Shown piece by piece: positions 1,879 to 34,604 of a stretch of 64,000 nucleotides of DNA. Each line of letters begins with the position of its first letter. Position 1 is the stretch's first letter. The position numbers and the translations under genes are program-made. The stretch is from contig DF236985.1 in the NCBI GenBank assembly GCA_000708835.1, positions 124,001 through 188,000 on the forward strand, in the 5' to 3' direction. The notes below the pieces were generated by a model. The model saw only the letters and a list, made by a program, of their open reading frames with translations, was not told the DNA's origin and did not search any database. The stretch comes from Klebsormidium nitens (taxonomy: Eukaryota; Plantae; Klebsormidiophyceae).

Positions 1879-4800
1879 TCACTCCACTGGCAAAAACACT
1901 TCGTTCGTCTTCAAAAACCACGGAACGAAGGGCGGATTATACCGCGCAAGCGTCGGCGTCCCGGTGACCGTCAAGCCCGCCTCTTCCAACGCTTCTCGAA
2001 GCGCCTTCTCCTTTTGCGCGGTAACTGCAAGGCAAAAACAATAACGGTGAGTAGTTAGCGCTTGAGCAGTTACCTGGGATAGAACGCAGCGTTCAGACCT
2101 TTGCGGTTTCTGTGCTTGTCCGTTCGTCGGGATCTGGTAAAAGGTTGACGCTCTTTGCTGGCTAGTGTAATCTGGTGTAATAAGGACTCAGTCCGGCATT
2201 CCACCGAATCAGGAAGCGGACCGATCCAAAAACCACCATCTATCCACACCCACAAAAAATTGTTACGGGTTGCATATATACACAACAGGCAATCTGATGA
2301 AGATGAAAGATGACGGACTTTCATCAATGCTTCCTGAATGCTCTCCACATCAGAGCAACAACAAATCATGCAAGACCGGTTTTCCCATGGGAGCAAACAC
2401 AGCAACACAAACTCAGCTTAAGACTCCACAAGAAAGACTTTTGCGGAAACTTCGAAGCAGCAAACGAGACCACTCACGTCCTTCAAGTGCAAGCTTAAGC
2501 TGATTGGCAATAACTCCGCTTTGCGGCCTTATCGCAGCAGCAAAATAAGACTACTCACGTTCTTCCGTCGTATTTCCCGAAAACTTTATCACGCCCAGCT
2601 TGCGTGCGGGCAGCTCCTTGATGGACACCCGCGAGTCCTTCGGCTTTGGCGCGTTCTCCATTGTGTACTTCTCCGGTAGCACGAACTGCATGATGGACTC
2701 TTTCTTGGAGCCGGAGCTCGAGTCGGCCGTGATCACCGGTGCAGTCATAGCGATCTTTTCACCATCCACCTTGTCGCTCTGTGGGGCAACGGCAAGAAGC
2801 GTGATCAGAACAAAACTCAAACGCGAAGGCGCTTGCACAAATCTTGGAGACGCTATCAGATGGTCAGAAACTGACTGTCTTCTTGCATCTTGCTACAAAT
2901 CTATGTTGCGGGGGAAGAAGAAACATCGGGATTGGTTACTGAAGGAAGATAGTGCTTCGTAAGAGACGTCAGCCTGTCTAAAAGACGGCAGTGGCTGTGA
3001 CTCCTGCACACTCGTCCCGTTTGTCTCGCGGCGCGGAGGGATCAGAACAAAGGCTAAATCAAAAGGAACCACTTTCCTCCAGAGCACGTCGCCATTGCGA
3101 TACGATAAACAAATACAACCCGCCTTGCTTTTCGCCCTGCTCAACTTCACAGTAAAACAAGAGGGGGAAGCAAATCCAGGTTGTGATTCGATAGAAAAGG
3201 AAAGTCGAGCAGGCATGACATTCGCATGCTGCCGGCAGCACTTATAGGAAGGCACGTTGACTGTCAAGTTCCTTACGTACGTTCCTTACGAAGGGACAGA
3301 CGATATGCAAGCCGCTACGTAGGGAACTTGACAGTCGTGTCCCTTCGTTGGTGAACCCGTGACAATGGCTTGATGTGACTTGCCAGATCGAATCCCCATC
3401 GGCAAATCCTCTTCGTCTAGATTTGTGCACATCAATCGACTCCAAAGTGACCGCCAAAGAGTCAAAAAATTGTGTTAAGAATTTGTTGAAGGGTGCCGCT
3501 CAAATCGTGTTATGCCGAAGCAAACACCTCAGATATGGGCCATGTACGGAAATTTACGGACCAACCTGCACCACTTATCCAAACTGGATCGTCTCACTTG
3601 GCCAAAATAATAATCTAATTCAGCCCCGTAGCACTGAAGGCGGCCAAGCTCTATCTTAAGCCCACCCCCCCATTCTTCGGTCCGCGCAATGAGATTTGCC
3701 TGCAGTACGTTTTCTCGATGTAAGGGGCCTTACTTTCCCCGTTGTCCCGGCCACATTATCAGGCTGATTGTCTTTGAGCGGCGAGTGGACCATAAACCCA
3801 CAGTTTGTGACCGGAGTGCTCACCGTCGGATCGCTGGTCTCAGTGATAACTGGCGCAGTCATCGCAATCTTCTCCCCTGACTCAGGCTTGCTCTTTGACT
3901 CATTCTCTGGGTTGCCGAAGACCCCAATGTACTTTGCCAGTGTCCTGAACGGGTCTGACTGATTCTTTCCGTAAGCCGCACCTGTGAAAACCGAAAGCTT
4001 TCCGTTGAGCAGGCTTGGCCTATGTTTGGTTAAGCGACTCTGACCCAAATGACTTGACTTCAGGCTGTCCCCTATAAGTGCCCGGCAATAGACAATCGAT
4101 CCTAGTGGGTGCAATGTCGGACAATGAGATGGCGTTGCTGCCTCTCCTTACGAGTGAAGCAAGGAAGGCATACTATATTGTCAGACCGCAACAACTAGCG
4201 GTTTGCCAGTGCGAGGTACACGATTCCAATGATAAAAGAAGTCCCATTGCTATGCCGGTGGCAAAGTCAAAAGGCGTCTCCGAATTTAATTGCTGCAAGA
4301 ACCTCTTTGTTTCAGCTTCCTGAGTGCCAACGGTTCTGATTGCCAACTCTCTAATGGCTCAGATTGCACTTGCGCAATCCGAAATCGGAATTATCCTTTC
4401 AATGTTCTCAAAGTCTTCCAAGCCTCAGTGCGGAACGAACAACGTCTGAAGAACTCTTTCAAGCTTGACATGCAAACAATTCAAATGCCGACGGGCAATC
4501 GCTAGTGTAACACGGTACTAGAGGCGTAAAGAAGCTCATTAGTAGTTGCGGTTGAATCATAACAAACTGGGGCTTTGTAAAGCAACGTGGCCTTACCCTC
4601 ATACTTTACCTCCGCAACAACGGCTGGAGGGTATTCTCGGACTTCATAGTTGGCCCCACTTGACACCACCGTGTACTTTGGTTGCTCTACAGTGACTCTG
4701 GTAAACCAGCAAAACGTAGTCAGTGTCAAAAGCTGATTTTCTTCACCAGAACATAGCGAATCAAGTCCACCCAGTTGCTCGTAGAAGGGGCTGAAGAAGA

Positions 4801-9400: not shown

Positions 9401-10927
9401 AAAAACACCAGAACGCACACGGGGTCGCCTTTTATGGAGCCGCACGAGGGGACGGACGCGCTGGCTCGAGGAGATCTAGACGCAGCGGAGGGGCTGGAGG
9501 AGTTGGTCACAGAGCGGGGCGGCGGAGGGAGTGGTGTGTGGCGGGATCTGATGCTGCACCCTACACCGGTGGTCAAGCGGATGCTGCTCATCGGGCTGGG
9601 GTCCAACTTCTTCCAGCAGGTGAAGTGGCTTCCTGAACTCGCTTTCTCCCATTCTTTTCGTTTGCCGAGCCGATCGGTCGCCAGTCCATGGCTTCCCTTC
9701 TCGAACTTGCTCCATGACCTCGAAAGAAGCGGGCAGCTAACATTTTCAGCGATCCGTGGCAGTCGCAAACCTTGCTGGCCGTTAGGAAAAGGGACTCATC
9801 TGATATCCCTGAGACATGGACAATGTGCAACGTCGACTGCCCTCACCCCTTCGTTCGCCGGGAGTTCGACCGGACCAGCGTGCTCAAAAGCTCGTCACCT
9901 TCAATTCAGCGAAACGTCTAAGCTAACTCGCTACCTTGTTTTCCAGGCGACTGGTGTGGACGCCATTGTATATTACGCTCCAGCCGTCTTCGCCCTCGCC
10001 GGAATCAACACCCGCGCGGGCGTCCTCGCCTCCACCATCGTGGTCGGGGCGGCCAAGGCCGGTTTCGTTTTGGTCGCCGTTTTCCTCTTGGACCGGGGCT
10101 GGGGAAGGCGACCACTCCTCCTCATGAGCGCGGTCGGTTGCACCGTATCCCTCCTAACCCTCGCCATCGGTTTCATGCTCCTCGGGGGCGGCATGAACGA
10201 CACCCATACGGCCCATGCTCCATCCCCCGGTTCCGCCGTTCCGGTCGGGCAGGACGGAACGGGGTTCCTCCGGTCGCTCGCGCCGGTGCTGGCTGTGACT
10301 GCCACGTGTGCGTACATGGCGTTCTTCTCGGCTGGGCTTGGGCCGGTGAACTGGGTTCTGGTTAGCGAGATCTTCCCGTCAAGGCTTCGAGCGCAGGCCA
10401 TGGGGCTCGCGACCGTTGTAAACCGCACGATCAGCGGCACTGTCTCCCTCACTTTCCTCAGCCTCGCGGAAGCAATCACCGCGGCAGGCACGTTTTTGCT
10501 CTTTGCGCTGATCGGGCTCGCATCCGTGGCGTTCTTCTATTACGTGGTGCCGGAGACGCGGGGGAAGAGCTTAGAGGAGATAGAGAAGATGCTCGCGCAG
10601 AAGGACGGCCCAGAAACGGAAGTTGCTAACGCTCCGACGGAAAAGCAATCGTGGTTAAGTAGACTGTACCAAAGGATCACAGGAATGTTTGCTCGAGGGT
10701 ATTCCGAGGTAGGAGATGCGGGACAGGACGATAGCGTGAACGGGACCGATGAAGATCAGACGCCCGTCAAGAAGGATACCGGTGATACCCGCCGCATCAA
10801 TAGGTTAGCAGCAGCTTCGGAGCAGGCAGAGGCTAGGTTAAGCTTGCGGGACAAAGTCAAGGCGATCGCACTGCGTAAAGAAAACGTTGGTCCATCGGAA
10901 TCGAGTAGGATGTTAGATGACCTGTAA
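6477..10927 (+). CDS. MFS sugar porter, polyol/monosaccharide transporter (PMT/PLT family), 5 exons, about 781 aa
   Basis: Exons 6477-6675, 7038-7190, 8008-8198, 8798-9619 and 9947-10927 join in frame (2346 nt). Motifs: LLGYDIGVMSGA, LSDYIGRK, GRLITGLGVG, PLYTAELAP..RG.L, MPESPRWLVMRGR, FFQQATGVDAIVYYAP, DRGWGRRPLLL, GLGPVNWVLVSEIFPSRLRAQA, VPETRGKSLEEIE. Confidence 0.95.
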
Positions 10928-11326
10928 ATCTCGTAAATGCACGCCGCGCGCTGTGATTTGATTCTGATCAGCTATCGATTGTAGCTGATCAACTATATTT
11001 AACGAGCTTGCCCCGCCTGATTGCTGTCCCATGTTCAGCATCAATACATGCCGGCGGGTCTGAGGACCAGCTCCCTGGCCATGTTCGTCATATCTTATGA
11101 ATCCACACCCTCATGTGAAACGTTGGTGAAGTCGCGATGAGGGAGCCCTAGGTCAGCTTGATGGATGCATGTGGATTGGCGCACCTTGAGCAAACATATA
11201 CATGTGCAACGCGTTGCATCAATGATGAGGGATGGGAGTCTACGCACGGTTAACTGAGTGAAAAAATGGCCACGGAGCCAAGACTCGAGACCAACTTCGG
11301 AGGTAACGGAATTGACAATGGCTGCC

Positions 11327-11434
11327 TACACCAGGCCCCACCAGGCAAGATGTTTGCAAGACAAGTGCAATGTGCACAGTTACACCAGGCCCCACCAGGC
11401 AAGATGTTTGCAAGACAAGTGCAGTGTGCACAGT
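11327..11434 (+). repeat. 54-bp tandem duplication (2 copies)
   Basis: tacaccaggccccaccaggcaagatgtttgcaagacaagtgcaatgtgcacagt at 11327-11380 is repeated at 11381-11434 with one substitution. Confidence 0.9.
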
Positions 11435-12672
11435 TAACCAAATCTCATTCTGTTTGAAGATCTGAAAAACTGGTGTTAAGTGCATTACAGGCCAGGCTGC
11501 GGAGAGTTTGGGGGCCTTGCCAGCAGCCTGATACAATGTTGCTGGAGGCTCTCTTCACAAGGCCTTCCTGGTGCTTCCGCACCCCAAGCAAGGCCCCTTG
11601 GGTCCCCCCAGAGGGCCCTGACGCAAGCTGGCACCTGGTAGTCTGCTGTGCACATTGCACACAAGGGCTGAAGGGCAGGGGGATCATCCCTGGCAGGGGG
11701 CGGCTGGGCTCTAATTAGGGAGGCTTCCCAAGGTCTGAGATTGACGCCATTGGCACTGGAGGGTCCTTGATGTTCAAGAAGCATGCCTGGAGATGGCAGG
11801 GGGATGGCAGCAGAGGTGGACTGGCATACAGCCTTTCCAATCTTGGAGAAAGGTATAGGAGAGGGTTGGCGGGCCTTTGTATTTCTTTTTCTACGCCTCA
11901 GCGGACCAAGTGCTTTAAAGCTTGCTGCCACGTCACTTCCACCATAGCCCCCCACAAAAGGGGCACAAAAGCCCGCACAAAAGGTCCGATTCTGGAGCTT
12001 TTTGAGTTGGCTGAAAGCTTTCAAGGGCCTGTAGATGCTACGCTTGGCGAGAAGAATGCTAATTTTTAACGCCTCCTCCTGCTACCAATGTCAGACTCCC
12101 AGCAAGAATTTGCACTTTTGTCACAAGAGCTGTTGAACCAAAGGCTTCATAATTTTTCTGACATTATGACATACTACTCTTTCAATTCCCGACCTCCGTG
12201 ACCAGCTCGAGGTCAGAGCCAAAAGACTGAATAGCAACACTGCAGACACTGCCGCCGTCCTGCAAGCTGACAGGGGTCCGCTGTTCTCAAGATTTACATA
12301 ATAGCGAGCTGGAACTTGCAAGTTCGGAGCTAGCAAGGGGGCCGTCAGATCGGAAGTTGCGACCCATGGATCTGCTTCCCCAGTTGGGGGATTCCCCGGT
12401 AGTGCAACCTGCCACTGAGGTGTCCTCCGCCTCCCTCGAGTTTTCACTGCATGAACGAGGTTGCCTGGCACCAGTCACGCGACTCACGGCGTCACCCTGC
12501 TCCTGCGGTGAGGAAGACACCTCAAACATTGCTTTCTTGCAATGTCATTGTGAGATACAGAGAGACTCGAAGGGCAACCATTTTAGAATCTGTTAAGGTC
12601 TCTAAGAAGGCAACCATTGATCGTCAAAACTGTCAAGGACTTTAATCTCTGCTCTATTGGCATTGCACCACA

Positions 12673-17964: not shown

Positions 17965-20900
17965 TTACTGCCCGTACTTGAGCAGGAAGTCGTTGTTGAT
18001 GACCTTGAACGACAGGCGCGAGTGCCCGAGCGCGGCCATGCGCGCGCGCGCCACCTCCTTCTTGGGGCGCACCACGATGCCCTCTCGGAAATTATCAGTG
18101 CCCGGGTACTTTCCCCGGGCCTTCTCCAGGAGCTCCTCCAGGGTGTAGCCGAAGCCCTCCCCCTCCTCGAGGATGCGTACCGTGGGGATGTCGAGCACCC
18201 GGGCGGCCTCTACAAACTCCTGTGTACCATACAACGAATGTTCGCATTTATGTTGACATTTCTTTCAGAAGCAGGCAACGGTAGTTTAGAAGCAGGGCTG
18301 TCACAGCCGGCGCCGCCAGTCAGCTTTTCTGGGCTCCGAAGGAAGACTCGCCTTCCAGATCAAAAGATATTTCAACTTTTAGAGACAAGTAATGTCTGAG
18401 AGGTGCTTGCCGAGCGGTCGACCTGGGACTTCAGTTCGATCTTGTCAGGGACTGCAGTTGGATCTCGTCAGAGTTCTACTTCAGGCAAAAGAAGCGCAGA
18501 GTCTGGAGAATTCACCAGTGTCGAATGCTCACGAAGCTGCAGTGCCTTATACTAGACATCTCGTCGAGAAATCACAGGGAAATCACACTTAAACTAGAAG
18601 AGCTCGTCATATGCTTCTGTCTGTAAGTCATCAATCTCGTCTGTAAGTTATCATTCTCAATTGTTCCAAGCGCCCACTTGACCACTTGCCTCGTAGTCGA
18701 GGTAGCGCCGCTCCTGGATGGACCACACGTTGAACAGCGCGAGCTGCAGCGCTTTCGCGCGACACTTGTTCTTCTGGAGCCCCGGGCCGTGCACCTCTCC
18801 TTGGAGTATCCAGTCCGGGTTGCGCGCGAGCCGCTCGCGCAGATTGTACAGCTCGGCGACCGCCCAGAAGGCAGTCTGGGCCTTGCTCGTCTCGTCCTCC
18901 CGAGCGATGCCCAGGTTGCGCGAGCACACCTGCGCGCGGAGAATCGGAGTTGTCGAAGTGAAATTGTCAGGCTTATGGCCCTTCACCTCTCAGAGCTTAT
19001 AAGTCTGATCGTTCGTCGGATGAAGCGGACTGCTTCTCGTGGCTGAATTCTCGTAAGATCTCACAATCCAAAGAAAGGTTTTTGAGTCCTGTTGCGAGTC
19101 GAAATGGCTCCCGTTCCCCTATGCCAAAGCGCCTTACGGCTCAACGATCTAAGGAGGAAGCCGCCCTGAGCGGTCGTTGATATGACCTGCTTGCGCTAAG
19201 ATGAGGGCTCACAAGTTGTCCACCGGCTAAAAAATCCGGAAACTCGTCGTAAATCTTCCACAGGAAACGATACGTGCATCTTCCCCCACCGCAAACTATC
19301 TTGCACCTTCGACCAGGTATTTATCGTGCATTGCTCGACGAGCCTCAGGTTCTGCTCGTTACTAGAGTAATGACGGTCCAGATCCTGGATAATCCGAGTA
19401 AAGATGGCCACGTCTCGTGAGAGAGACCTCGGGTCGATCGCGAAATAGCAGAGGAAACAATCGGCGAGAAAAGTGTCACGTCACCTTGAGCTCCCCGTCC
19501 CAGAGGCCGAACGGCCCCGAGGCGCCGTCGACCTTTTCGGCGATGTAAAAGGGAAGACCCCGCAGGGCTTCCAGCAGCTCCAGGCTGCTTTGGACACGTG
19601 GCTCGTCCGTTTTGGAGGGGCCGCGGCCGCCGAACACGGAGGAAAAGGCGACGCCGCCACCTGCGGACGCGCGGGGTTTGGGGGTTTGAGGGTTTGCGGT
19701 TTGGAGTCGGGATGTGGGCTGTGGGGTTTGAAATGCGGTGATGCGCTTGAGGCGCTTCGAAGGCCCAGAAGAATAGATCTTGTAAGTGGCCAGTCAAAGA
19801 TAATCTTGCGCTCAAGGGGCTTTTAAAGGGGGAGGAAACGAAGCAGTGACGCTCAAACTGAGTGAATGCGTCAATTGTCCACTGAGCTTGCGAGGGATTT
19901 GTTGCGTCGATAGGAACTGCCGATAGGAACTGTCGATAGGAACTGCCGTCACTGATCCGAGCCTCGAGTTGCAAGATACAGAAAACGTCTGCGGCAACCG
20001 GTATCTGGTTACAGTAACTTATCAAGAGACATTCCTTGGTCACAATCTGCTATCTCTCTCGGAAGAGATAAGTGGTATTCGCAATGTCCAATCTCGAAAC
20101 CGCAGAACAAGAGCCCTTTGCTTTCAGAGCAACAAGGCTATCCTCGAATTTCTGTGCACGAGATAGATCTTTCAATAATATCATCGACAACGCAGCAGAG
20201 AACAGTGTGCTTACGTGGCATTGGGTAATTTCCCGGTTCCTCAAAGATCCGCTTCTCGATGCCCAGCGCGCGCGTCAGGTCCGCGCCCTCCACCCAGTCC
20301 CCCTCCCCGACCGGAAACTTGTCGCTCCGGGGGAGGAAAAGGCCCTGCGAAAGCTCCCCCCGCAGCTTCAGGGTCTTGATCTTGCGCTTCCGCTCGTCGA
20401 CGTTGTGCCACGTGGCCTCCGGCAGGATCGAATCGATCTCGAAGTAGACGCCCACGTCGCCCTCGCGGCTGTCGATAGGAACGACGACGCGCCACCCGCC
20501 GACTTCGGCGATGGCGAGACGGTCAGCGTTGGGGTGCGGGGAAACCTTGCCCAATTTTACGACCTGATTAATGAAACCAAAGAAGAAAGGTTAAGGATCG
20601 TAAACGTGGGGGAGGGTCGAGAGTATCTAGATACACTGCACCTGCTCTGGGGACGGAGGTCAAGGGTGTTCTGCGTTGGGGTGGGGCAAAACTTTGCCCA
20701 CTTTCGCGACCTGGCTAACGTAACCAGAGAAGGTTAGAAAACAAAGCGGAAGCTCAGAGCAACCAGATTTGATGCTTCTGCTGTTGAGGGCGATCGAAAT
20801 GCGTTCGTTCGGGTTAGGCTTTGCACAAATTCGCGAGCTGCTTTATGTATCAAACGTAAGACCCGTTAGGAACAGTGAAAGGTACTAAGAGTCTGACTCA

Positions 20901-22334
20901 GAAGCATAGCACCTGGTTCTGGATACTAGATTTGAGGGCGGCCAGCGTGGGGGAGAGGGAAGAGATCGTGCCCAGCCACACGACGCTGAATTGGCAAGCA
21001 GAAAGTAGCTGGAATGAACCCATTACAGGTGATTTGTGCTGGAACATTGGGAAAAGATGGGAAAAGGTCACGTAGGAAAAGTTACGTCAGATGATCTTCG
21101 TAAACGGACGTAACATGAGAACATACTTTCTGGCGGTGCGCCGTTAGGGTGGGGAATGACTCGCTCAGCTGACCGTACGTAAAGTAGGAGCGACATCGTC
21201 TGGTGAACATAAGGGAGTTGACCTGGCTTCTCTTGGTTTACTCCTCCATCGGTTCCAAAGAACCAGTCAACTTATGAGCAAACAAAGCGGGCTCAGAGTA
21301 GCCGTACAACGTACTTATTTGCGTCGACTGCTCTGATTGAAAAAAGCAAAGAGCAACTTGAAATATTCAGTATTTGGTCATGAGAACTTCCGTGAGGAGA
21401 AGCTGGCGTATATGAGACTCAAGGAGTATATGAAATTCAAGGAGTCACCGCAAACCCCCTTCTGATATTCTGGTAACGTCCAAAACGAGATAGTCGCAGA
21501 ATGGGAACAAAGTCCAACTCTCCAAAGAGTATCAGAATCGGACAGAAACCTGAACGACAGAAAACCTGAACAAAAGCTTTGAGATGTCACGTGGCCATAA
21601 TCTAAATGGAAAATGGCAGACAAGCAGGCTGTTTGAAACGCAGACAGTTTCGAAGTCAAATTGCTGATTACCTTCGCCATCGAGCGAGAGCTCTCATCAA
21701 GATCCAGCTGGTTCAGAGCCGCAAGGTCAGCTGCTTCTCCCATACTTTTGTTCCCTTCGACGATCCTGGAAGCCTCCATCTTGCTCTCGGTTACACTTCC
21801 GTTCTCTTCCGCGGTTTTGTTCAGCTCCTCCACGATCTTTGGAGCTTCCATGTTGCTGTTTATCTTCTCTGCAGCACTTTTGTTCTCCTCACCCAGCTTG
21901 CTTGCGTCCATAGTACTGCTGCTCTTTACCCCAGTTTCCTGCTCTTCAGCGATTGCAACAGGTGCTTTGCTTGCGTCATGAAGATCATGAGTGGAGCTTT
22001 TGTCTTCGTTTGGCGCCATTAGTACAGAGGGGATACTAGTACAGAAGCTGCGGCGTCTTTGTTGCGTTCCAGGTAAATGACGCTGAGCAGCAACGCCGCG
22101 CGCCCTGTACTGCAGCTCTGTGTCGAACAATGTTCGCAGCAAGCTGCAAAACTTCCGGCGTTTTAGCTCAGGGCTTGCACAACCTTGGAACAGTGTGCGC
22201 TGTACTACTAGCAAGCCTGCCTGACGGGAACCGTAACAACCATACAATGCAGCACTGCTGTGCAGCTTCATAAAAGCTGCGCAGCCAGCGACGCTCGGCT
22301 TGCCGAGACATGAGCTGAACTGACCGAAAACCAT
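17965..22334 (-). CDS. ATP-dependent RNA ligase of the Rnl5/DRB0094 type (OB domain + nucleotidyltransferase domain) with an organelle-targeting-like N-terminal extension, 5 exons, 560 aa
   Basis: Exons 21672-22334, 20215-20563, 19485-19660, 18690-18929 and 17965-18219 join in frame (1683 nt). OB domain: RSMAKVVKLGKVSPHPNADRLAIAEVGGWRVVV...GDVGVYFEIDSILPE...IKTLKLRGELSQGLFLP. Then KTDEPRVQ, motif I EKVDG, Ia VCSRN, III LQGEVHGPGLQKN, IIIa LFNV, IV REGIVVR and V SFKVINNDFLLK. Confidence 0.88.
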
Positions 22335-22552
22335 GATGACTAGACACGAGTGGACTCCAAAGTGATGATCCTGTTAAGAGGAGAAGTGACGGATACGTTC
22401 CAAGGCTTGTTGAGTCATGAACAACACAATGTGCCGGTCTGTCCAATGCACTGTCCATTGCAGTAATATGAGCAGCTACGTCAGGGCTACGTCACTGTTC
22501 TCCGCTATGTCACGCTGCAGCGTGTAACCGCTTGAGTAGACTCAGTAGTCCT

Positions 22553-24458: not shown

Positions 24459-25111
24459 AGATCGACCGTACGCCCGGACGGTACCATGCCAGGCTGGAAA
24501 ATTGTTAGTCCGCAATGGCTGGACTTTGGACGGCCAACATGCAGCGTGTGCGGCCATCGGACGGTTTGAATAGAGCACCGTCCGCAAGAAGTCACGCAAC
24601 CGCGGCATTTTATGAAGGGGCTCCGTTTACGGTTTGTTTGCAATCCCCCCTTAAGATCCGGAATGTCCTCGAAGCTGCTCCAGGCGGGGTTGCGCGACCG
24701 GGGCGACGTCGACGCGTGCACACCGTCGATAACGGATGTTGGACTTTAGGAAGCCGTCCGATAAGGGCCAAAAAGTGACCGATCGACCATGCATGATGCA
24801 CAATGCTGAGGCAGTCTGCAGCTTTCAGCAGAAAATTACGACCTGTAAGAAGCGCTGTATTAAAACTGAGTGCTTGTGAGGTCCAGCTGATCAGAAGGAA
24901 GCGAGCAGCGCCTCCTGTGACATTCTGCTTTTACTGTTGGGCGCCCTACGATAGCCCCTGATTCGCATCTATTTCTGAGGGAGCACCAGAGGGGCGCCAC
25001 AGGTTTCCAAGAGCAATCCAGCTGTCTGCGGGTCTCGCATCCAGCTGTTTCCTTCAGCTTATTGCTCAACATCCGCACGCGCGCCGAAGTCTCTAATCAA
25101 TCGCAGCAGCC

Positions 25112-28100
25112 ATGGCGTCTTCAACTCTCCTCCGCCCGCTTGCGCCAATCCCAATTTCGGCCCCAGTGGTTGCTTCAGCAAAAACTCCAGCCGGTCAGGA
25201 GGGGCGATTGTCAGTGGGGATGCCTGCACGCAGCTTCAAGAGCACGGGCGGAGCTGGCCGGAGCCAGTTCTTAGGTGGTGCTGTGCCAATCAAGTCCTTC
25301 CAGAAGAAGGCCGTGAAGGGTGAGCCAATAGTACTGATTGTCTCGCCTCTTGAGCTAGACTTTGTTTACCCCAGTTGAGATGGTGGCTTCTGGAGGTGCC
25401 GTAAGTTTGATGCTGCAACGTTGCCAGAGTCGTTGGAGGTTAGGGGTAGCTGCAACAGGGCCTTCTGCAATCAGTCACTTGCATCAGTTGCGCTCGTTGC
25501 TGGTGAGTAAATGAATTGCGTTGGCTGGCTTCCTTCGTAAGACTCACAGGGTGAGGTTTGGCATTGCGCTCTGGGAAAGGATATTGCTCACATCATCTAG
25601 CTGAGAAGGCCTCAGCCAGTGCCTTTGCCCATCAGCCCCGCAGAGTCTGCGCTTCTTGCTTGAATTATGTGGTCTTGCACGCGCCACTGCTCGCCCTCTT
25701 TTCTTTAACAATGGAGGATACTAGGATACTCTTTTGACATGCCCCCTACTTTGCTTCGTACTTTCCGCATCGGCAAAACGTCGTTTATGGTGGTAGCGTG
25801 CCCATTTTGAGTTCGTTGCGTCATCGATAAGTATCGTTGAGTTACCAGCGCCAGTTTGCGGGACGAACTTTTCAGTGGTGTAGTACTACAGCCACATCTC
25901 TTCATTCCCCTCAGATACTCAATAGTTTGTTGGAGACCTTGTGCGTGAATACTGATGTGTGCGGGCGCGCAGAGCGTACAGTGCTGAGCTGTACAGAAAC
26001 GCATAAAGTTTGCGTTCTCACTAAGACCTATCTGTTGTTTGCTCCACGTCCATTTTGAGAATGTTCCTTCCCAATCCCGTGCAGGCGAGCAAAGGCCTCT
26101 CTCTGTGGAGGCCAACGTGTTCAAGCGCGCCAAGCGCATGGTGCAAAGCTACACCACCGCCGTGAAATCGTCCATCGAGGACCCGGCCAAATTGCTGGAC
26201 GACAGCATGCGCGACCTGGACAGGGAGCGGCAGAAGGTGCGGGAGACGGTCAAGCAGGTGAGCTGATGACGCTTGATGACGTTTGACGGCGCTTGTTGAC
26301 GCTTGATGACAATTCCTCTACCAGGAAAAGCGATCGTTGGCCTCATGTTAAGATTGTGCTTTGTGAAGAGGCTTGTTCTATGTGCAGCCAAAAGAAAGTG
26401 AGGATTGAGCAGCAGCGTCCTCATCCAGCTGGTTTAAATGGTTGCGATCAGTCTCGTTTCTAAGGACTTAAGGAGATTCCTGGTGGCTTTTATTGGCGGT
26501 TTTGACAGACACCTGGAGAATTTTGACGAACACCTGGAGACTCTTGAAAAACAGTATAGTCGAACGGGGTCACAGCTCATACCCTGTGTTGACAGAACAA
26601 GCTTAAGCTTGGAGTGATTCATCGGCCCAGCTGTTGCAGGGAGCAATCCGAGTTTTTTCATCCGGTTATTAGATCGCCTGTTCCCGATTGCGCTGTCCAT
26701 GTTCGCTAAAGAGCAGAGTATGTTTGTGGGCTCAACTCTTCTGATGTCGAAACTGTGCTGGGTTGCAAGCATTTACGTAGCTAGGGCGCTTAAAAGGAAG
26801 CTCTAAACTTTTCTCCTCCTCTGGCAGGTCCAGTTCTCCGTTACTCAGTTGGAGGGCCGCGGGCGGCAGGCCGCACTGCGCGCCCAGGAGTGGCACGACC
26901 GGGCCAAGAGCGCGCTCGAGAAGGGTCACGAAGACCTGGCTAGGGAGGCGCTGAGGAACCAGAAGGAATACGAGGTGCGAACTCCTTTTTCAGATGCTTT
27001 TCATTGCTGAGCCGTCAGGTGGGAAGTCTGGAAGCTCGAAACGTGTGCATTTGTCTCGCTAGTAACGGTTCTATTTGCCAGGGATCGGCAGGAGAGCAAA
27101 ACACTTTATGAGTTTCGGCTTTGAGAGCCAGGTGCCTTTTGCAGACAGCGGCACAGAGGGACGAAGCACATTTGAGCAGTGCTTAGGACATGCTCCTAAC
27201 AGGGTTTTTCCAAGTTCACGGTTTGCTTGTTTGGTGGTACTTCATCTTCGTCTGTGGTTCTTCATCTTTGTTTGTTCCTTTGCATCTTGAGTGAACGTTC
27301 ATTTCACAACTTGGATGGACAATCTTGCAAACGCATCAATGACAAGTCACACCGGTAAGTTTCGTAATCGTATACAGTTCACATTCCAAACGGCCAACAA
27401 TTGATTTGAGTGGCTCAGAAATATAAATACTTCCTGCTTCATCAGGCGAGCGGCGCGTCGCTCCAGGCCCAGTGGAAGCAGCAGACGGCGCTGCTGACCA
27501 AGTTGGAGTCGAGCGCGGGGCTCCTCGAGGAGAAGATCGAGGAGGCGCGCGCCAAGAGGACCGCGCTCGTCGCGCGCGCACAGACCGCGAGCGCCAACCG
27601 GCGCGTCCAGGAAATCCTGGGGGGGATCAGCACCGGCGGGGCAGTGGCCAAGTTTGAAGAGGTAAGCGGCTGCAACGCAAGCTTTGATCTGCGGATAAGT
27701 GGGTCTTGAGGATCCAGTTGTATGGTCTCCGAACGCTTGGCATCGGATGGTGGATTCAAGTTCTTCCGCATTCTCACCGTTCGCGATGCTAGACACGCTG
27801 CAGGGGACGGACACGCTCAAACAGTGGCTTTGAAGCGCGTCAGAGAAGCTCACACTGCTTCGTCCTATGTTCGTCATAGGCGATATCGCTTTCCGTTCAT
27901 TGCTATCGAGCAGTATTGCAGTTCGCAACAGCCCTTGTTGTCTTTCGTTGGAGCCTTTTGACCTGGCATTAATACATCAGCGTCAATAGCTTGGTGATTC
28001 CAGATTGACCAGACGGTTGTATTCGAAGGCAGCCCGTAGCCTCTTTGTTTGATTCGCATTTCCTTAGCCCACTTTCTTGAGTTGTATTCGGAGGCCGCCC

Positions 28101-29049
28101 GTAGCCTCTTTGTCTGATTCGTATATCTTTAGCCCACTTTCTTGCGTTCTTGAGATGGCGATGGTTTTTCGTTCTTGCATCCGAACGAAACATGGATCAT
28201 CGAACCACAGACTTGAGCTCATCTCTTTCTGTTTTGTTGCAGGTGAAGGAAAAGGTCAGCAAGCTTGAAGCCGAAGCGGAGGCCCTGGCAGAGGTTACTG
28301 GGGAGTCGCTGGAAGTACGTTTCCGTAACCTGGAGCGGTCAAACATGGACCGTGAGCTAACCCAGTTGCGGGCGGAGGTTGGTACCACCCCCCGGAGGGA
28401 CGAGGTCGCCGTTAAGGACCGGGTTAGCTTACCCGATTTCCTTAACCTGAAGCGGCAGTCAGACGAAAAGCGGAGCAAGGCTGCGGACGTAGAGGTCATC
28501 GACGCGGACGAACTAGAGCGCCGCTTTAACCAGCCGCCTGTGCTCGCGTCAGCAAAGACCGAGACCGACGTCAGCAGGCGGTCGGAGGAGAAGCCCTGGT
28601 GGGCCGGCCGCGAGGCCGGCCGCGACTGGTGGGGTGACGAGACTCAACCGAGCGACCCTCAGAGCGGCGGCTGGCCCAGCTGGGGTGACGTCAGCGGTGA
28701 CGTCAGCAGGCGACGCGAGGGCGACGTGGTGCCCGCTTTCCCTTGGCAGCGGGTCGCCGCTTTGGCGATGCAGCTGGCGTTTGGTTTTCTAGTATTTGGG
28801 GCTGGTTTGGGGGGCCGCCCGGGGCCCAATACGTACGGCCCAGGCCTGCCCGGGGGAATGGTTCTGGGCGGTCCGTTTATGGGACCGGGGAGGGTTATCG
28901 TGAGGAGAGCGAGTCCGTTTGGCAGTCCGTTTGGGAGTCCGTTTGGCGGAAGTCCGTTCGATCCGCTGGGCCAGCAGGTGCGCCCGTATGGCGGCCGGAT
29001 GATGCCAAGGCGCGGGGGAGTTGTATATAGGCGCATCATCATCAACTGA
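25112..29049 (+). CDS. Plastid-targeted PspA/IM30 (VIPP1-like, ESCRT-III superfamily) protein with a long C-terminal extension, 5 exons, 516 aa
   Basis: Exons 25112-25319, 26085-26257, 26828-26974, 27446-27661 and 28243-29049 join in frame (1551 nt). A Ser/Ala/Pro/Arg-rich transit-peptide-like start is followed by NVFKRAKRMVQSY...SSIEDPAKLLDD, EWHDRAKSALEKGHEDLAREAL, EKIEEARAKRTALVARAQTA, AKFEEVKEKV.KLEAEAEAL and LEVRFRNLE, the PspA/VIPP1 pattern. Confidence 0.88.
28016..28145 (+). repeat. 65-bp tandem duplication in the last intron of the VIPP1-like gene
   Basis: gttgtattcg(a/g)aggc(a/c)gcccgtagcctctttgt(t/c)tgattcg...ttagcccactttcttg starts at 28016 and again at 28081. Confidence 0.85.
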
Positions 29050-30275
29050 TTGCGTGTTAGTAGGCGAGGGGCATACAACTGTCATCAGCTCGGATTGGGG
29101 TGTACATTGACAATAATTAGTACTCTTTTATTACTCTTATTATTGCCCGCATAGCAGTGAATGGCAGCGATAGCAGCTGTCCGTATGAGATACCACGATA
29201 TATAAGGCCCGTAGGGCATCTGTAAAGACATGATACATTGAAAACTGCAGGCAACATACTAGGTTACCGAGCTGAGTTAGTTTATAAACTATAGTCTATA
29301 GACTTCGATGTTTTAACAAGAATTTAGCACTGCGGTTTTAGCGCCTCTTGTTGTATGAAAGTCAGGAATTGAAACAGGCTTAAATTTCCTTGAACGTCCC
29401 GGTTGAATTCTAGTCGGAAGCTGCATATGCACGCAATCGATCGGGCCAGTCGAAATAGCCGTTCATTGCTAGGGCGTTGCACGTCAAAGCATCCATGTTC
29501 ATGAGCTTTGAATTTCGTAATTTGATATTAACAAGTTCGTGCATGCTAGCTTTGTTTCATCTATGCATCTCATCATGAGGAAGGGCCCGCACAACATCTC
29601 GCGCATGTTGTATAGATCCCTGACTATTCTACCCGTGATCGACGCCCTATACCGTACGTCTGCGCAAGCGCAGGCCGCGCCCCATGCGTGGTCGTTGTCG
29701 AACTAGTAATATTCTGAAGGCATGCACGCACGCCGCGCGGGACTCATGTTGCATCATTCCGCGCAGCGCCCGCGCCTAGGTCGCCCATGCAAACTCCTAT
29801 GTGCCCATGGTCGATCATATATCCGTCAGGATGTGCATGCGTATGATCATCACAATCTGCAGCTAGCAACCATGATCGATGCGCCATTTCTAATTGATTT
29901 TATCTCGATATCGCTCACCATGCGCACTTTTGACAACTGTTGCGCAGCTAGGGCGGGGGGGCTCGCCTGGCAGCAGCCGCAGACTACCCCGCAATCCATC
30001 ATTGTTAATCGATATATGAAAATCCTGATCGAACGTGTTCCTGACCACACCAGGACCGTTAGTACAGGAGACGTTGACTTCGAGCTTGGAAGCTTGCCAC
30101 AACAATGATCATCGAGCCAAACGTACTGCAACTGATATATTGACGTGGACATTTTGAACATGCTAAAGAGTGGGTCACAAAATCGATATAAAACCGGAGC
30201 AGAACAACGGAAAGCTGTAAGAAGATAATCAGCAATCATACAACTGTGGCCGGCCTAAATCCCTTCTTGTATGTG

Positions 30276-33200
30276 TTAGTTTGCAGGCGTCCGCATTAGA
30301 TTAAGAGCTCTGTCAAGCGTGCCATTTGCTTTGTGTACCTCATTCGCCGGCCCCATGCGGTCCCAAAGACCAGCATTCGGGTCCGTGACGTCATTCAGCG
30401 CCGGCTTTTCCCCACCTCGTCTCTGGTCCCTGGACTCGACCTTACGCAACCCTCCTTCATCTCTGTGCCTATCTAATTTGTGTGCAGCTTCGCTTTTGCG
30501 AGCTTTGAAGAACTCAATCGCCCTGTCAATCACCTGAACGCAGTGGTGGACTTCGCCGCTGGTGGACACTTGTTCGCTCACGGACGGCCGTTCTCTCGCC
30601 GGTGCATAATCGTTTCGCCTTATACTGCCATTCGCTTGCGCGTGCTTGTACTTGTCAAAACTGGGGACTGAACCCTTTTTCCTACCGCCGTCGGCTGAAG
30701 TGCTGACTGACTCCCTTGCATCTGACGAAGCCCCAAGCTCCGTTTTCTTATCTACGTACCCTTCTAGACGGTCTTGGCCATTTTCGCGTGCTACCCCCGA
30801 CTCACGATTTTCTGTCCGAGAACGAACCCCTACTTGACTCGATAAGAACGCATTCGCACCCGCTGTTTCGTCACTCCGAACCTCAGTCACCGTTCCCCGC
30901 CGGGTATGCTCTTCGACGCGGACCTCGGCTTCTGATACCTCTGCGCTTCTGCCGGACGCATTGCCGTGGTTCGAACTAACCACCATCTCGGACGCCCCCT
31001 CGACCGTCCGGTGAAAGCCTGCTGCACTTCGGCCGTCCGATTTGGGCGCCGCGAGGCCCCCCTTGACCTGCTGCAGAAAGGGGTCCGTCTCCAGGAGGCG
31101 CTGGAAGACCTTGACGAACTTGGTGTCCTTGGCTGACGTCACGTCCTGGACGACCTGCGCAGGCGGAGATGACGTCAGTGTATGCGGTACGAACTAACTC
31201 CTTCAAGAGAACGAAGCAATTGTGAGCCGGTGGCCAAGCAGGATCTTTTCTCCGCAAATTCTGGCCATTACGAAGACTCTTCGAAGTCGGCATAATTGTT
31301 GCAGGGTGCTTCGCTATCAAGAAGTAGGATACTTTGGAAATGTAGTACCTTGCTGCAAACCGCCTGGATGCGAAAACTTCGTCAGCGAAGTCACAATGCA
31401 CGAAACAGGACAGAACCGGATAAATACCGTGCATTGGCGCTCCTACTTTCCGAACGGGCGTGGCCCCTAGAAAGTCGATACTGCCGCACTTTGGTAAGCG
31501 GACATCATGCCGGGGCTCGAAAAGTCGTCTAAATTTCCCCTCGAATCAGCCCTGTCTCTTCACGCAGACTCTCAAGAAATGTTGCAACAGTCAATCGGGA
31601 GAATTGTACTACCACACATAAAGTATGTGCACCCTTTCGCATCGTCTAGGCCGTGTCCCGACATCTCACTTCCTTCGTTCTCCAAACTTTCGTTCTCTAA
31701 TAGCCCAGCAGCCCCAATACCCTTGTACAAACTCTGCGGACGCATATCGGACCGTCCTTACCTTTTCGAACAGCTTGAGTCCGAGCCCCGCCAGCTGGCG
31801 CGAGATGAAGTTTATGACCCACGCGGGCACGAGCGCCAGCTTCAGGTCGATGTCCGCAATCGTCCGAAAGTAGCACTGCGAGGGGGCGATTTGCTGGAAG
31901 ATGTACCCCCCCACGACCTCCATCCGCGTGATGCCCTTGTCCTCGGGGGGAATGGGGGGGCCGTCTTCGGACAGGGGGGAAGGACCGGGGGGCAACTGAT
32001 GGAACAAAACAGGGGCTCAGTCTGGATTGTCCGTGGCTGTGAGTATGTCTTAAAGTGGCTGTGATATGTTCCTCACGCCGCGCAAGCCCCGTTAGGAAAG
32101 CACCTCATCAAGAGGGGTGCGGATCTTGGAAACAAAAAAACCGGTTCCTTCTCCTTTGCAGACTCTACTACCATGTACAAGTTACACGACAAGCCCGAAC
32201 GGGAAAGGCCGATCTGACCGCGCTGTCTTGAGCCTAGAGTATCAAACCGCATCCTTTCGGCGACATTGCGGTGGCACAATGCGGTGCGTATAAGGGGTTT
32301 GAATCCTCGCCGTTTTCATGAGCACTATGAGGACGTCCTGTATCAAATAGTCCACGGCATATGCCTCCAGCACGATCTCACGGGCGGTGAAGGGCCAAGG
32401 CACCTTGAACCTGCATTTACGAACGACTCAACCAGGTGAACTTTTCACCAAAGAACTCCGAAGATGGAGAGACCAATACGCGGGACGCTGGGTATAACAC
32501 TGAAGAAGACATGCAAGGATGCCTTTCTTCTTTGCTTGATAATTGCGCGGTAATGAAAGGGAGCAACGGACGGCCTCAGTTTGAGATTTGTGTATTTACA
32601 TACTTAGACCAATCTGATTCAAACAAGAACGACGCGAACAAAGACTATAATGGGCTCCCTCTGACAGAAAGCCCTGTAAACATTGGCATCTCGAGACGGC
32701 ACAAAACAGTAACAAATGGGACGAGCGCTGTAAACTTGAAACTCACCTGACAGACGCAATAACCTGTCCTGGCTTTGGCTGCTCGAGCCACTTCGACTCG
32801 GAGATTTTGAACGTCGGGACTGTGAACTGCAAGCAAAGTGCAATATGGTTCGTGTTTGCGTCATTATGTCTGTTGCTTGAATACTTCGGGCTCATAATGT
32901 GCGGTTTGCCGCTCTTGTGAAAGTTGAGATACATGGAGGCACGAGGTCGAACGAAAACGTGAACCGTCTTGATGGTCGCTGCGTACAAGACAAGCTGGGT
33001 GTCAATGTCAAAAGAGGTCGTAAGCTTAACATAATTTCGTCTGTTGAGCAGGCTTCTACGTCGACTCTCTGGGCCGAACGTAGTGACACCAAATCTTCCT
33101 CTCAAGTTCCATTCTAGAATGTTGTGTGGAAGACAACCGTTATGTAAGGGAAGAACTCAAGAGGACGGCCACTGAAGCATTCGTATCTCAGTCTTCCAAT

Positions 33201-34393
33201 TGAAGAAGGACTGTCAACCAGTTTATGCAACGCACCTGCGGCCACCAGTCCTTAAAGTAGGGGGCCTCCCAAGCAACACACAGCGCTGCAGTTGACAGTC
33301 AAGTAAAGTATCAGTACACACCTTAGGGAACCACTCCCTGTAGTAAGGCACACCATACGCCACTGACAGGGCTGCAAAGCAAGCAGGAGTTGCATTTGAG
33401 GGCTGGGCTTCTCAAACTCAACTGTCAAGAAGAGGCGCGAAGGCAGGGTGCATGTATCATGTCTTGGCGGATGAAGCAATCAATCAATTGTCAGAAACCG
33501 CATGTGCCGAGCATATTGCGCAGTTTTATTTTTGCTGATCTCATTGGGACGCATAAGTCCAGTCAAAGCCAGTTTCTTTGAGAACATGCATGTACTGAAC
33601 TCTATCAAGGTTGGCCCGAGGGACTAAAACACTCTAATTGCTCTGTGCAAGCGCACTCATAAAGGATGGAACAGCATTCCTAATTGTACCTGTCGCAAGT
33701 GGCCCGTTGATCATGCCCTCGAGACACAGGGTGTGTAGCGGAGTCCCCTCCGGACCCTTCCGATACAGCACACGCATGTTGCCAGTATCCTCCTTGACCT
33801 GCAAAAGTGGATCCCCATTTGAGCAGTCCTTTGACCATTCAGCACTTGGTTTTTCTGCACAACCACTCTGGAAAATTGAAGTCAATATGGCTGCAGAGGC
33901 GTCCAAAGAGGGGGGCGAGGACTCTTTTAAATGTTCAACATTCCGGAGTGAACTCCGTGAACCCCCATATCGTTCGTACACACCTGACCATTTCAGATTG
34001 GCATACAGCTGGACTTGCAAACGAAATGCACGATTGGTTGCTCGTCAGGATGAGAACTGTTGAAGCAGCCGGGCGTGTTGCCTTAAGAAGCTGCAAGGAC
34101 TTCTTTGAGGAAAAGTCAGGTTCTTGCTCCCTCACTTTCCAACCCCTCCCATCAATGTCGTCCACCACTGCGCTCTCTTTTGCCAGCTCGCCGCTCACGC
34201 CCCGCAGCTCCGAGAGGAACCTCCATACCTCCTCAAAGCGGCTGTTCAAGACCCCCCCATCGGACCCCAATTGCTCCCCATCTGGTGAATGTAGAAAGGC
34301 CTTGTTGACCAGCCGGCGCACACTGTCCTTACTGCACAGGTCGGCGGAGGACAGGGCCTCCTCAAGCCGAGCTCTTGCAGATGTCCTGTCCAT
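30276..34393 (-). CDS. START-like (SRPBCC superfamily) lipid-binding domain protein, 7 exons, 569 aa
   Basis: Exons 34136-34393, 33690-33798, 33236-33285, 32747-32826, 32311-32410, 31762-31995 and 30276-31154 join in frame (1710 nt). Motifs GWKVKEDTGNMRVLYRKGPEGTPLHTL.LEGMINGP, LCVAWEAPYFKDWWPQFTVPTF, FKVPWPFTARE and DIDLKLALVPAWVINFISRQLAG are typical of the plant START-like family. The C-terminus is low-complexity. Confidence 0.8.
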
Positions 34394-34604
34394 GTCTGCC
34401 TACGGGAATGCGCACATTTTACTTTCTGTTGTGCGCCTCGGCCAATCCGCTGAGGGTTGAGCAGTCAACAATCCGTGGCTCAAGCAGAGCTGCAACCATG
34501 CAGTTGCTTTTGCGGGGCCCAAAGGGATCGCAGCCAAGGGCAGCGAAGCACAAGCAAAGAGAATGCCAATGCCAGGCGTCTGCTTCACGAGCTTCAGGAG
34601 GCAC

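Follow-up and report, generated by a model that had tools for sequence, protein, structure and literature searches.

Does an alga encode a member of the VIPP1/PspA family that carries its own membrane anchor? According to a review (PMC12661324), neither VIPP1 nor PspA has transmembrane helices, although both bind membranes, and more than 98% of the PspA homologs surveyed are single-domain proteins (PMC11237479). The question is raised by a locus of Klebsormidium nitens at positions 25112–29049 on the plus strand of the window, by which we mean the whole 64,000-nt stretch of DNA analysed here (contig DF236985.1, positions 124,001 to 188,000 of the forward strand, assembly GCA_000708835.1). An initial annotation, made from the letters of this stretch, had described the product as a complete PspA/IM30 core followed by roughly 230 extra residues, and had suggested a self-anchoring subunit of the VIPP1 type. 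Based on transcripts, orthologs, phylogeny and sequence properties, we consider it somewhat better than an even chance, with a probability of about 0.55, that the gene encodes a lineage-specific, VIPP1-derived, ESCRT-III-like subunit carrying its own membrane anchor, and probably a paralog. That the gene is real, expressed and conserved and has a unique tail is solidly established.

The locus is a nuclear Klebsormidium gene. Splicing of the interval 24600–29600 by reading yielded five exons with GT..AG introns throughout, which join into a single open reading frame of 1551 nt encoding 516 amino acids. Twenty public sequencing runs contain the gene stretch in whole or in part, and those holding about 43–50% of its sequence words were taken as candidates for spliced mRNA, exons and untranslated regions (UTRs) together being estimated at about 44% of the stretch. 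One run from each of four studies provided a single spliced contig of 1.9–2.2 kb, which we compared with the window across 25000–29300. All four runs carry the same joints, 25318/9 to 26084/5, 26253/7 to 26824/8, 26972/4 to 27444/6 and 27659/61 to 28241/3, each of the GT..AG type and each as predicted, and the mRNA contigs show 0 letter differences from the window. The RNA continuity of the exon at 28243–29049, a check proposed together with the initial annotation, was confirmed in the contigs of all four studies, where exon 5 runs unbroken from 28241 to past 29300. Transcripts that stop or are spliced ahead of the tail, named beforehand as a refuting outcome, were absent among the contigs of the four runs, with the reservation that assembled RNA contigs may overlook rare isoforms. 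The locus is a real, expressed gene of the PspA/VIPP1 family, as had been claimed, with a long tail in the same exon and the same mRNA as the core.

What makes the tail a candidate for an anchor is a hydrophobic span of 21 residues, VAALAMQLAFGFLVFGAGLGG (28753–28815, plus strand, as are all features of the gene; residues 419–439). Its Kyte–Doolittle mean over 19 residues is 2.01, its Eisenberg hydrophobicity is 0.73 and its hydrophobic moment 0.11, so that the span, already pointed out in the initial annotation, scores as transmembrane on simple hydropathy scales and has the sequence properties of a candidate membrane helix of about 20 residues. It is preceded by FPWQR and followed by Arg, and contains AxxxA and GxxxG spacing. 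AlphaFold2, run on the last exon with three sequences, predicts a helix at exon-5 residues 167–186, with pLDDT values of only 55–64 in a model that is poor overall (mean pLDDT 49). Proteins of the plastid VIPP1 subfamily are soluble or peripheral and lack a transmembrane segment, a description from which this protein departs in sequence by its 21-residue hydrophobic span.

To find out how widely the span and its surroundings are shared, the last exon was used in several searches. A word search, which carried a length filter that hides full-length proteins, returned two proteins only, P0001 (88% identity, Logan assembly) and P0002 (70% identity, JGI metagenome), both of which proved to be open-reading-frame calls of the last exons of orthologous genes in two related algae. 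Both orthologs could be rebuilt with the same five exons and GT..AG borders, giving proteins of 515 and 506 amino acids. One ortholog contig, L002, shows synteny with the window to either side of the gene, and the other, L001, matches in exons only. A profile of the three last exons, run against 1.84 billion representative proteins, matched the P0001 cluster, a repeat-junk protein (P0003) and a VIPP-like protein of Spirogloea (P0004), the latter through the core helix only, and revealed no carrier of the tail beyond the gene's own cluster. No annotated full-length protein bearing the tail was present in the protein libraries searched, a feature search of the tail in the ESM Atlas gave no usable match, and no Pfam family matched the 268-residue last exon at E values up to 1. 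All canonical VIPP1s inspected end after helix 7, without a comparable hydrophobic span. An equivalent tail common among known orthologs, which had been named as part of a further refuting outcome, was not seen; the tail is absent from the other VIPP1 and PspA proteins retrieved and has no detectable relative outside a narrow Klebsormidium-type clade.

Selection on the three orthologs was estimated from a codon alignment as the ratio of nonsynonymous to synonymous substitution rates (dN/dS, Nei–Gojobori). The PspA core gave values of 0.04–0.11, the linker that follows it (residues 296–345) 0.10–0.33, the Trp-rich segment 0.28–0.38, the hydrophobic span 0.00–0.03 at a dS of 0.46–2.4, and the Arg/Gly/Pro/Phe tail behind the span 0.11–0.20. 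The hydrophobic span is therefore constrained at least as much as the core, and the fastest-evolving region is the leader. The C-terminal extension overall has a dN/dS of 0.17–0.18, and all three species retain it intact, with dS values reaching about 1.2. The motifs EEKPWWAG, FPWQRVAALAMQLAFG, YGPGLPGG, SPFDPLGQ and RPYGGRM and the terminal YRRIIIN are invariant in the three species. Both the hydrophobic span and the tail are under purifying selection.

The core in front of this extension is that of a complete PspA/IM30 protein. Exon 2 (26085–26257; residues 70–127) encodes the end of the leader, the amphipathic helix alpha0 with the sequence NVFKRAKRMVQSYTTAVKSSIE, and the first part of the hairpin; exon 3 (26828–26974; residues 128–176) encodes the PspA/IM30 hairpin, and exon 4 (27446–27661; residues 177–248) the portion of the core from the hairpin to the last core helix. 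The three exons match Pfam family PF04012 co-linearly, exon 2 at profile positions 1–47 (E = 3.5e-8; 33.8 bits, 0.1 under the gathering score of 33.9), exon 3 at positions 54–97 (E = 1.7e-8; 34.8 bits) and exon 4 at positions 102–169 (E = 7.3e-13, above the gathering score by itself), which places the protein in the PspA/IM30 family. The best PDB matches of exon 4 are cyanobacterial Vipp1 chains (E = 6.5e-8). The last core helix lies at the start of exon 5 (28243–28383; residues 249–295), where the first 50 residues align in hhalign with columns 256–305 of a canonical VIPP1 alignment, the last core helix (91% probability, E = 8.8e-7), and AlphaFold2 places helices at exon-5 residues 2–16 and 21–46. 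The Pfam matches of exons 2 to 4 and this helix together bear out the complete core that had been described. Alignment to canonical VIPP1 is gap-free from alpha0 to the last core helix, and later gaps coincide with gaps in the canonical proteins. Helix alpha0 aligns with the canonical NIFxRxxRxVKSY and is kept in all three orthologs; with a hydrophobic moment of 0.57 and a net charge of +4 it is predicted to be the membrane-binding amphipathic helix characteristic of the family.

Exon 5 (28243–29049; 268 amino acids) encodes the last core helix, the entire C-terminal extension and the stop codon. The extension beyond the core comprises 221 residues (296–516), close to the number first given, and the motifs quoted at that time, KPWWAG, RDWWGD, GGWPSWGD, AFPW, the hydrophobic span and three copies of SPFG, are all found in the translation. 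It begins with a charged linker (28384–28533; residues 296–345) containing two short predicted helices, LKRQSDE and DELERRFN, at exon-5 residues 70–76 and 88–95 (AlphaFold2, low confidence), whose position suggests a possible remnant of VIPP1 helix 7. The hhalign alignment ends before these helices, and Smith–Waterman comparisons of the linker with helix 7 gave p values of 0.03–0.71 over nine targets, uncorrected, with no clear gain over shuffled sequence. A Trp-rich, mostly acidic segment predicted to be disordered follows (28534–28743; residues 346–415), with EEKPWWAG, RDWWGD and GGWPSWGD; the 73 residues from 346 to 418, up to the hydrophobic span, contain seven Trp and carry a net charge of −3. 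Behind the span comes the Arg/Gly/Pro/Phe tail (28816–29049; residues 440–516 and the stop codon), with its SPFG repeats and YRRIIIN terminus, in which 77 residues include 10 Arg, 0 Lys, 1 acidic residue, 18 Gly, 13 Pro and 5 Phe, for a net charge of +9. Its DNA contains exact tandem units of 12 nt, GGCCGGCCGCGA twice, GGTGACGTCAGC twice and AGTCCGTTTGGC three times, the last unit encoding SPFG and lying at 28912–28947, and the repeat copy number varies between orthologs. Because the tail has no homolog and is partly made of 12-nt repeats of variable copy number, we infer that its origin was probably local, the reading frame having been extended and short repeats having undergone slippage.

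Upstream of the core, exon 1 (25112–25319; residues 1–69) encodes a Ser/Ala/Pro-rich basic leader whose composition resembles that of a chloroplast transit peptide and which would direct the protein into the chloroplast. The leader is poorly conserved among the orthologs (42–76% identity); transit peptides usually are.

Where the core comes from was addressed with a family profile search, which gave more than 1,100 PspA/IM30 proteins, the best 120 of which were streptophyte VIPP1s; a second search with the algal VIPP1 P0033 gave a best 120 of similar make-up. Cyanobacterial Vipp1 and PspA proteins, from a scan of prokaryotic genomes with P0013, and intron-less chlorophyte VIPP1s from marine metagenomes were added to the comparison. 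In the mixed alignments exon 2 was misaligned and was excluded from them. A maximum-likelihood tree of 47 rows unites the three Klebsormidium-type proteins in a clade (100/100) that nests in streptophyte VIPP1 (96/94), within the green-plastid clade (100/100) and apart from the chlorophytes (99/96) and the cyanobacteria. The stem of the Klebsormidium-type clade measures 2.21 changes per site versus a median terminal branch of 0.14, and a quick tree agrees; as long branches can be misplaced, the placement calls for caution and the exact position inside the streptophytes is uncertain. The position is consistent with a gene of a streptophyte alga. The phylogenetic check suggested with the initial annotation thus has the core falling with streptophyte VIPP1 and not with bacterial PspA, and this placement contradicts direct descent from cyanobacterial PspA. 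By alignment and tree, the gene is a descendant of streptophyte VIPP1 that retains the whole co-linear core.

The core has nevertheless changed much. Its identity to canonical streptophyte VIPP1 is 39–43%, compared with 70–76% between Marchantia and algae or angiosperms. The Klebsormidium protein keeps 64 of the 100 positions at which 14 canonical streptophyte VIPP1s do not vary, as against 82–87 in chlorophyte VIPP1, 73–77 in cyanobacterial Vipp1 and 69–70 in cyanobacterial PspA, and under a strict criterion of VIPP1 core-residue conservation it falls outside. By these counts the distance to canonical VIPP1 is greater for this core than for cyanobacterial Vipp1. Rapid change that gave way to strong present constraint is the pattern expected of a duplicate with a new role, and we regard it as fairly likely that the gene is a paralog alongside a canonical VIPP1, neofunctionalised after duplication. 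The alternative that it is the organism's sole VIPP1, a fast-diverged ortholog that acquired a tail and performs the normal VIPP1 job, is less probable, though a serious minority view. It agrees with the retention of the entire core and of alpha0, and with the lack of a canonical Klebsormidium VIPP1 among the best 120 matches of the two length-filtered family searches, which did contain VIPP1s of Chara, Spirogloea, Mesotaenium and Closterium; likewise, when metagenomes were scanned with an alignment of algal VIPP1, the scan listed no contig from the metagenome bearing L001 among its matches. Since the lists held only the top 120 and were length-filtered, this absence is weak evidence and weighs little in favour of a sole VIPP1. 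Such an ortholog would also be at odds with the slow evolution of VIPP1 elsewhere, evident from the identities given above, and a stem more than 10 times the length of its neighbours is what duplicates released from their original function usually show.

If the protein is a self-anchored subunit, its mode of action can be outlined as follows. Because alpha0 and the co-linear core are retained, it would be expected to fold and polymerise like a PspA/VIPP1 subunit. Its hydrophobic helix would insert in the thylakoid or inner-envelope membrane and convert a soluble or peripheral subunit into a permanently tethered one, and the Arg-rich tail may bind a partner protein or the head groups of anionic lipids. 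Once tethered, the subunit could polymerise with itself, or seed and position polymers of canonical VIPP1. Given the conserved hydrophobic span and the Arg-rich tail, the protein is probably fixed in a chloroplast membrane. Several points weigh against this picture. Membrane insertion is predicted from simple hydropathy scales and the poor AlphaFold2 model, and plastid targeting from the composition of the leader and the alignment of the mature N-terminus. The similarity of the linker to VIPP1 helix 7 is not significant. The searches described above retrieved no canonical VIPP1 of Klebsormidium, and paralogy leans on branch length. Finally, the charge of +9 on the 77 residues behind the span is awkward for a single-pass topology with a stromal core. 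The length of this segment exceeds the usual limit for classical tail-anchored proteins. Since so long and basic a tail is hard to translocate, the span may be embedded in a single leaflet, leaving both ends in the stroma, or a translocase would be needed; alternatively, the span could mediate protein contacts.

The last possibility is part of a different account, in which the tail is no anchor at all and instead forms a disordered, low-complexity module, elastin-like or FG-like with RGG-like Arg motifs, that serves in self-association or condensates or in binding nucleic acids or partners, the span being a protein–protein contact. The abundance of Gly, Pro, Phe and Arg in the 77 residues, their predicted disorder and partial origin from 12-nt repeats would suit such a module, and the charge of +9 speaks against translocation; some database records, moreover, call VIPP1 'plastid transcriptionally active 4', which is a protein of the nucleoid fraction. 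This account explains less well why the span is under tighter constraint than any other part of the protein (dN/dS 0–0.03), why it falls in the transmembrane range on two hydropathy scales with almost no amphipathic moment, and why it is flanked by the interfacial FPWQR and by Arg as is typical of membrane helices, and we consider it rather improbable. Far less probable still is an artefact, whether from a pseudogene in decay, from reading through into the 3' UTR or from the merging of two genes. The lack of a Pfam family and of homologs outside the close clade could be read in that way, but the tail shares an exon with the last core helix, is continuous in the mRNA of four studies, and has remained intact in three species over the synonymous divergence and at the dN/dS reported above. 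A pseudogene, a gene merger and read-through are all contradicted by the mRNA continuity and the purifying selection. Of the initial proposal of a self-anchoring VIPP1-type subunit, then, the parts that stand are an expressed gene, a unique tail conserved under purifying selection and a transmembrane-like span; the comparison with PspB/PspC is retained as an analogy only.

The comparison with known systems shows where this protein departs from its relatives. Canonical streptophyte VIPP1/IM30, as in Marchantia (P0050), Chara (P0057) and Physcomitrium (P0017), shares with it the Pfam family, the co-linear core and a transit-peptide-like leader; unlike the canonical proteins, however, the Klebsormidium protein has no recognisable helix-7 motif EIExELNELRRKA and continues for about 170 residues past the canonical end, the hydrophobic span included. 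Chlamydomonas VIPP2, which lies outside our comparison data set, is a lineage-restricted extra copy beside VIPP1, as the Klebsormidium gene probably is, and mixed polymers have a precedent there: its interaction with VIPP1, reported in a review (PMC13051332, citing Theis et al. 2020), points to hetero-polymers. A second clade of streptophyte VIPP proteins, comprising Spirogloea P0004 and P0005, the moss proteins P0006–P0012, and also P0035, is separate in the tree (100/99), with the Klebsormidium gene outside it, and its members are of normal length and lack the hydrophobic tail. Spirogloea and Physcomitrium possess members of this second clade alongside canonical VIPP1 (the moss members include 'VIPP1 isoform X1/X3'); its proteins are without the helix-7 motif and end in ELPPWE or ELPPFE and a short basic stretch, and no literature discussing the clade was found. 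The second-best protein in the VIPP1 search, P0124 of Brassica cretica, annotated as a 551-residue 'PspA/IM30 family protein' (58% identity over 82% of the query), far exceeds the usual length of VIPP1 and probably results from merged annotations.

Looking further afield, the PspB/PspC and LiaI proteins, to whose function the tail had been likened, recruit PspA and LiaH to the membrane as separate proteins, and the last exon has no Pfam match to the PspB, PspC or LiaI families at E values up to 1. Another analogy in principle is offered by eukaryotic ESCRT-III, where CHMP6/Vps20, which is myristoylated, and CHMP7, which is bound to the endoplasmic reticulum, are tethered nucleators of the cytosolic polymer, i.e. 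membrane-held members that seed soluble subunits, as we propose here. CHMP6 and CHMP7 use an N-terminal lipid or a membrane-binding domain in the cytosol, whereas the Klebsormidium protein would use a C-terminal hydrophobic helix in what is predicted to be the plastid, and the kinship is at the level of the superfamily only. Taking the analogy to its full extent, the protein would be an integral-membrane member of the superfamily that marks fixed sites on the thylakoid or inner envelope and nucleates canonical VIPP1, a plastid counterpart of CHMP6/CHMP7 in one terrestrial algal lineage, or, more strangely still, it would have replaced canonical VIPP1. We regard this extended version as speculative and put it well below an even chance.

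The surroundings of the gene are conserved as well, the whole neighbourhood being syntenic between the window and the species carrying L002. Exons of the flanking genes (window 20399–22339 and 30283–34494) are 65–92% conserved against L002, and the introns are not. On L001, the contig of the more distant ortholog, the downstream neighbour (9985–12281, minus strand) is a gene with Rieske and PaO domains, of the pheophorbide a oxygenase/Tic55 type, which has no match in the window; five neighbouring open reading frames examined with Pfam matched no family. The introns contain repeats of their own. Intron 2 holds a 10-nt unit repeated 4.7 times directly after the exon 2 donor (26264–26310) and a 21-nt unit repeated 2.6 times (26500–26553), and intron 4 holds a 65-nt tandem unit in two copies of 89% identity just upstream of the last exon (28016–28148). 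In intron 1 of the L002 ortholog (3712–3782), the 5' portion of exon 2 is present a second time as an incomplete copy of 82% identity, some 100 nt upstream of the genuine exon; no such copies of exon edges are present in the introns of the window gene.

No literature was found on transmembrane VIPP or PspA proteins of algae or on the VIPP genes of Klebsormidium. How VIPP1 polymers reach particular membrane sites is an open question in the field, where separate partners such as VIA1 and small transmembrane proteins are being pursued as recruiters (PMC13051332); separate partners are the only kind considered in this review of how chloroplast ESCRT-III interacts with membranes. In Klebsormidium, a highly conserved and essential family has yielded a fast-diverged, extended copy in a land-dwelling streptophyte alga, with an extension that has no detectable ancestor and is built in part from repeats, yet is strongly constrained today. 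If our reading holds, this VIPP1 derivative with its own conserved anchor would demonstrate that a single chain can both tether and polymerise, and it would provide a natural tool for probing how permanent membrane attachment affects the assembly of VIPP1.

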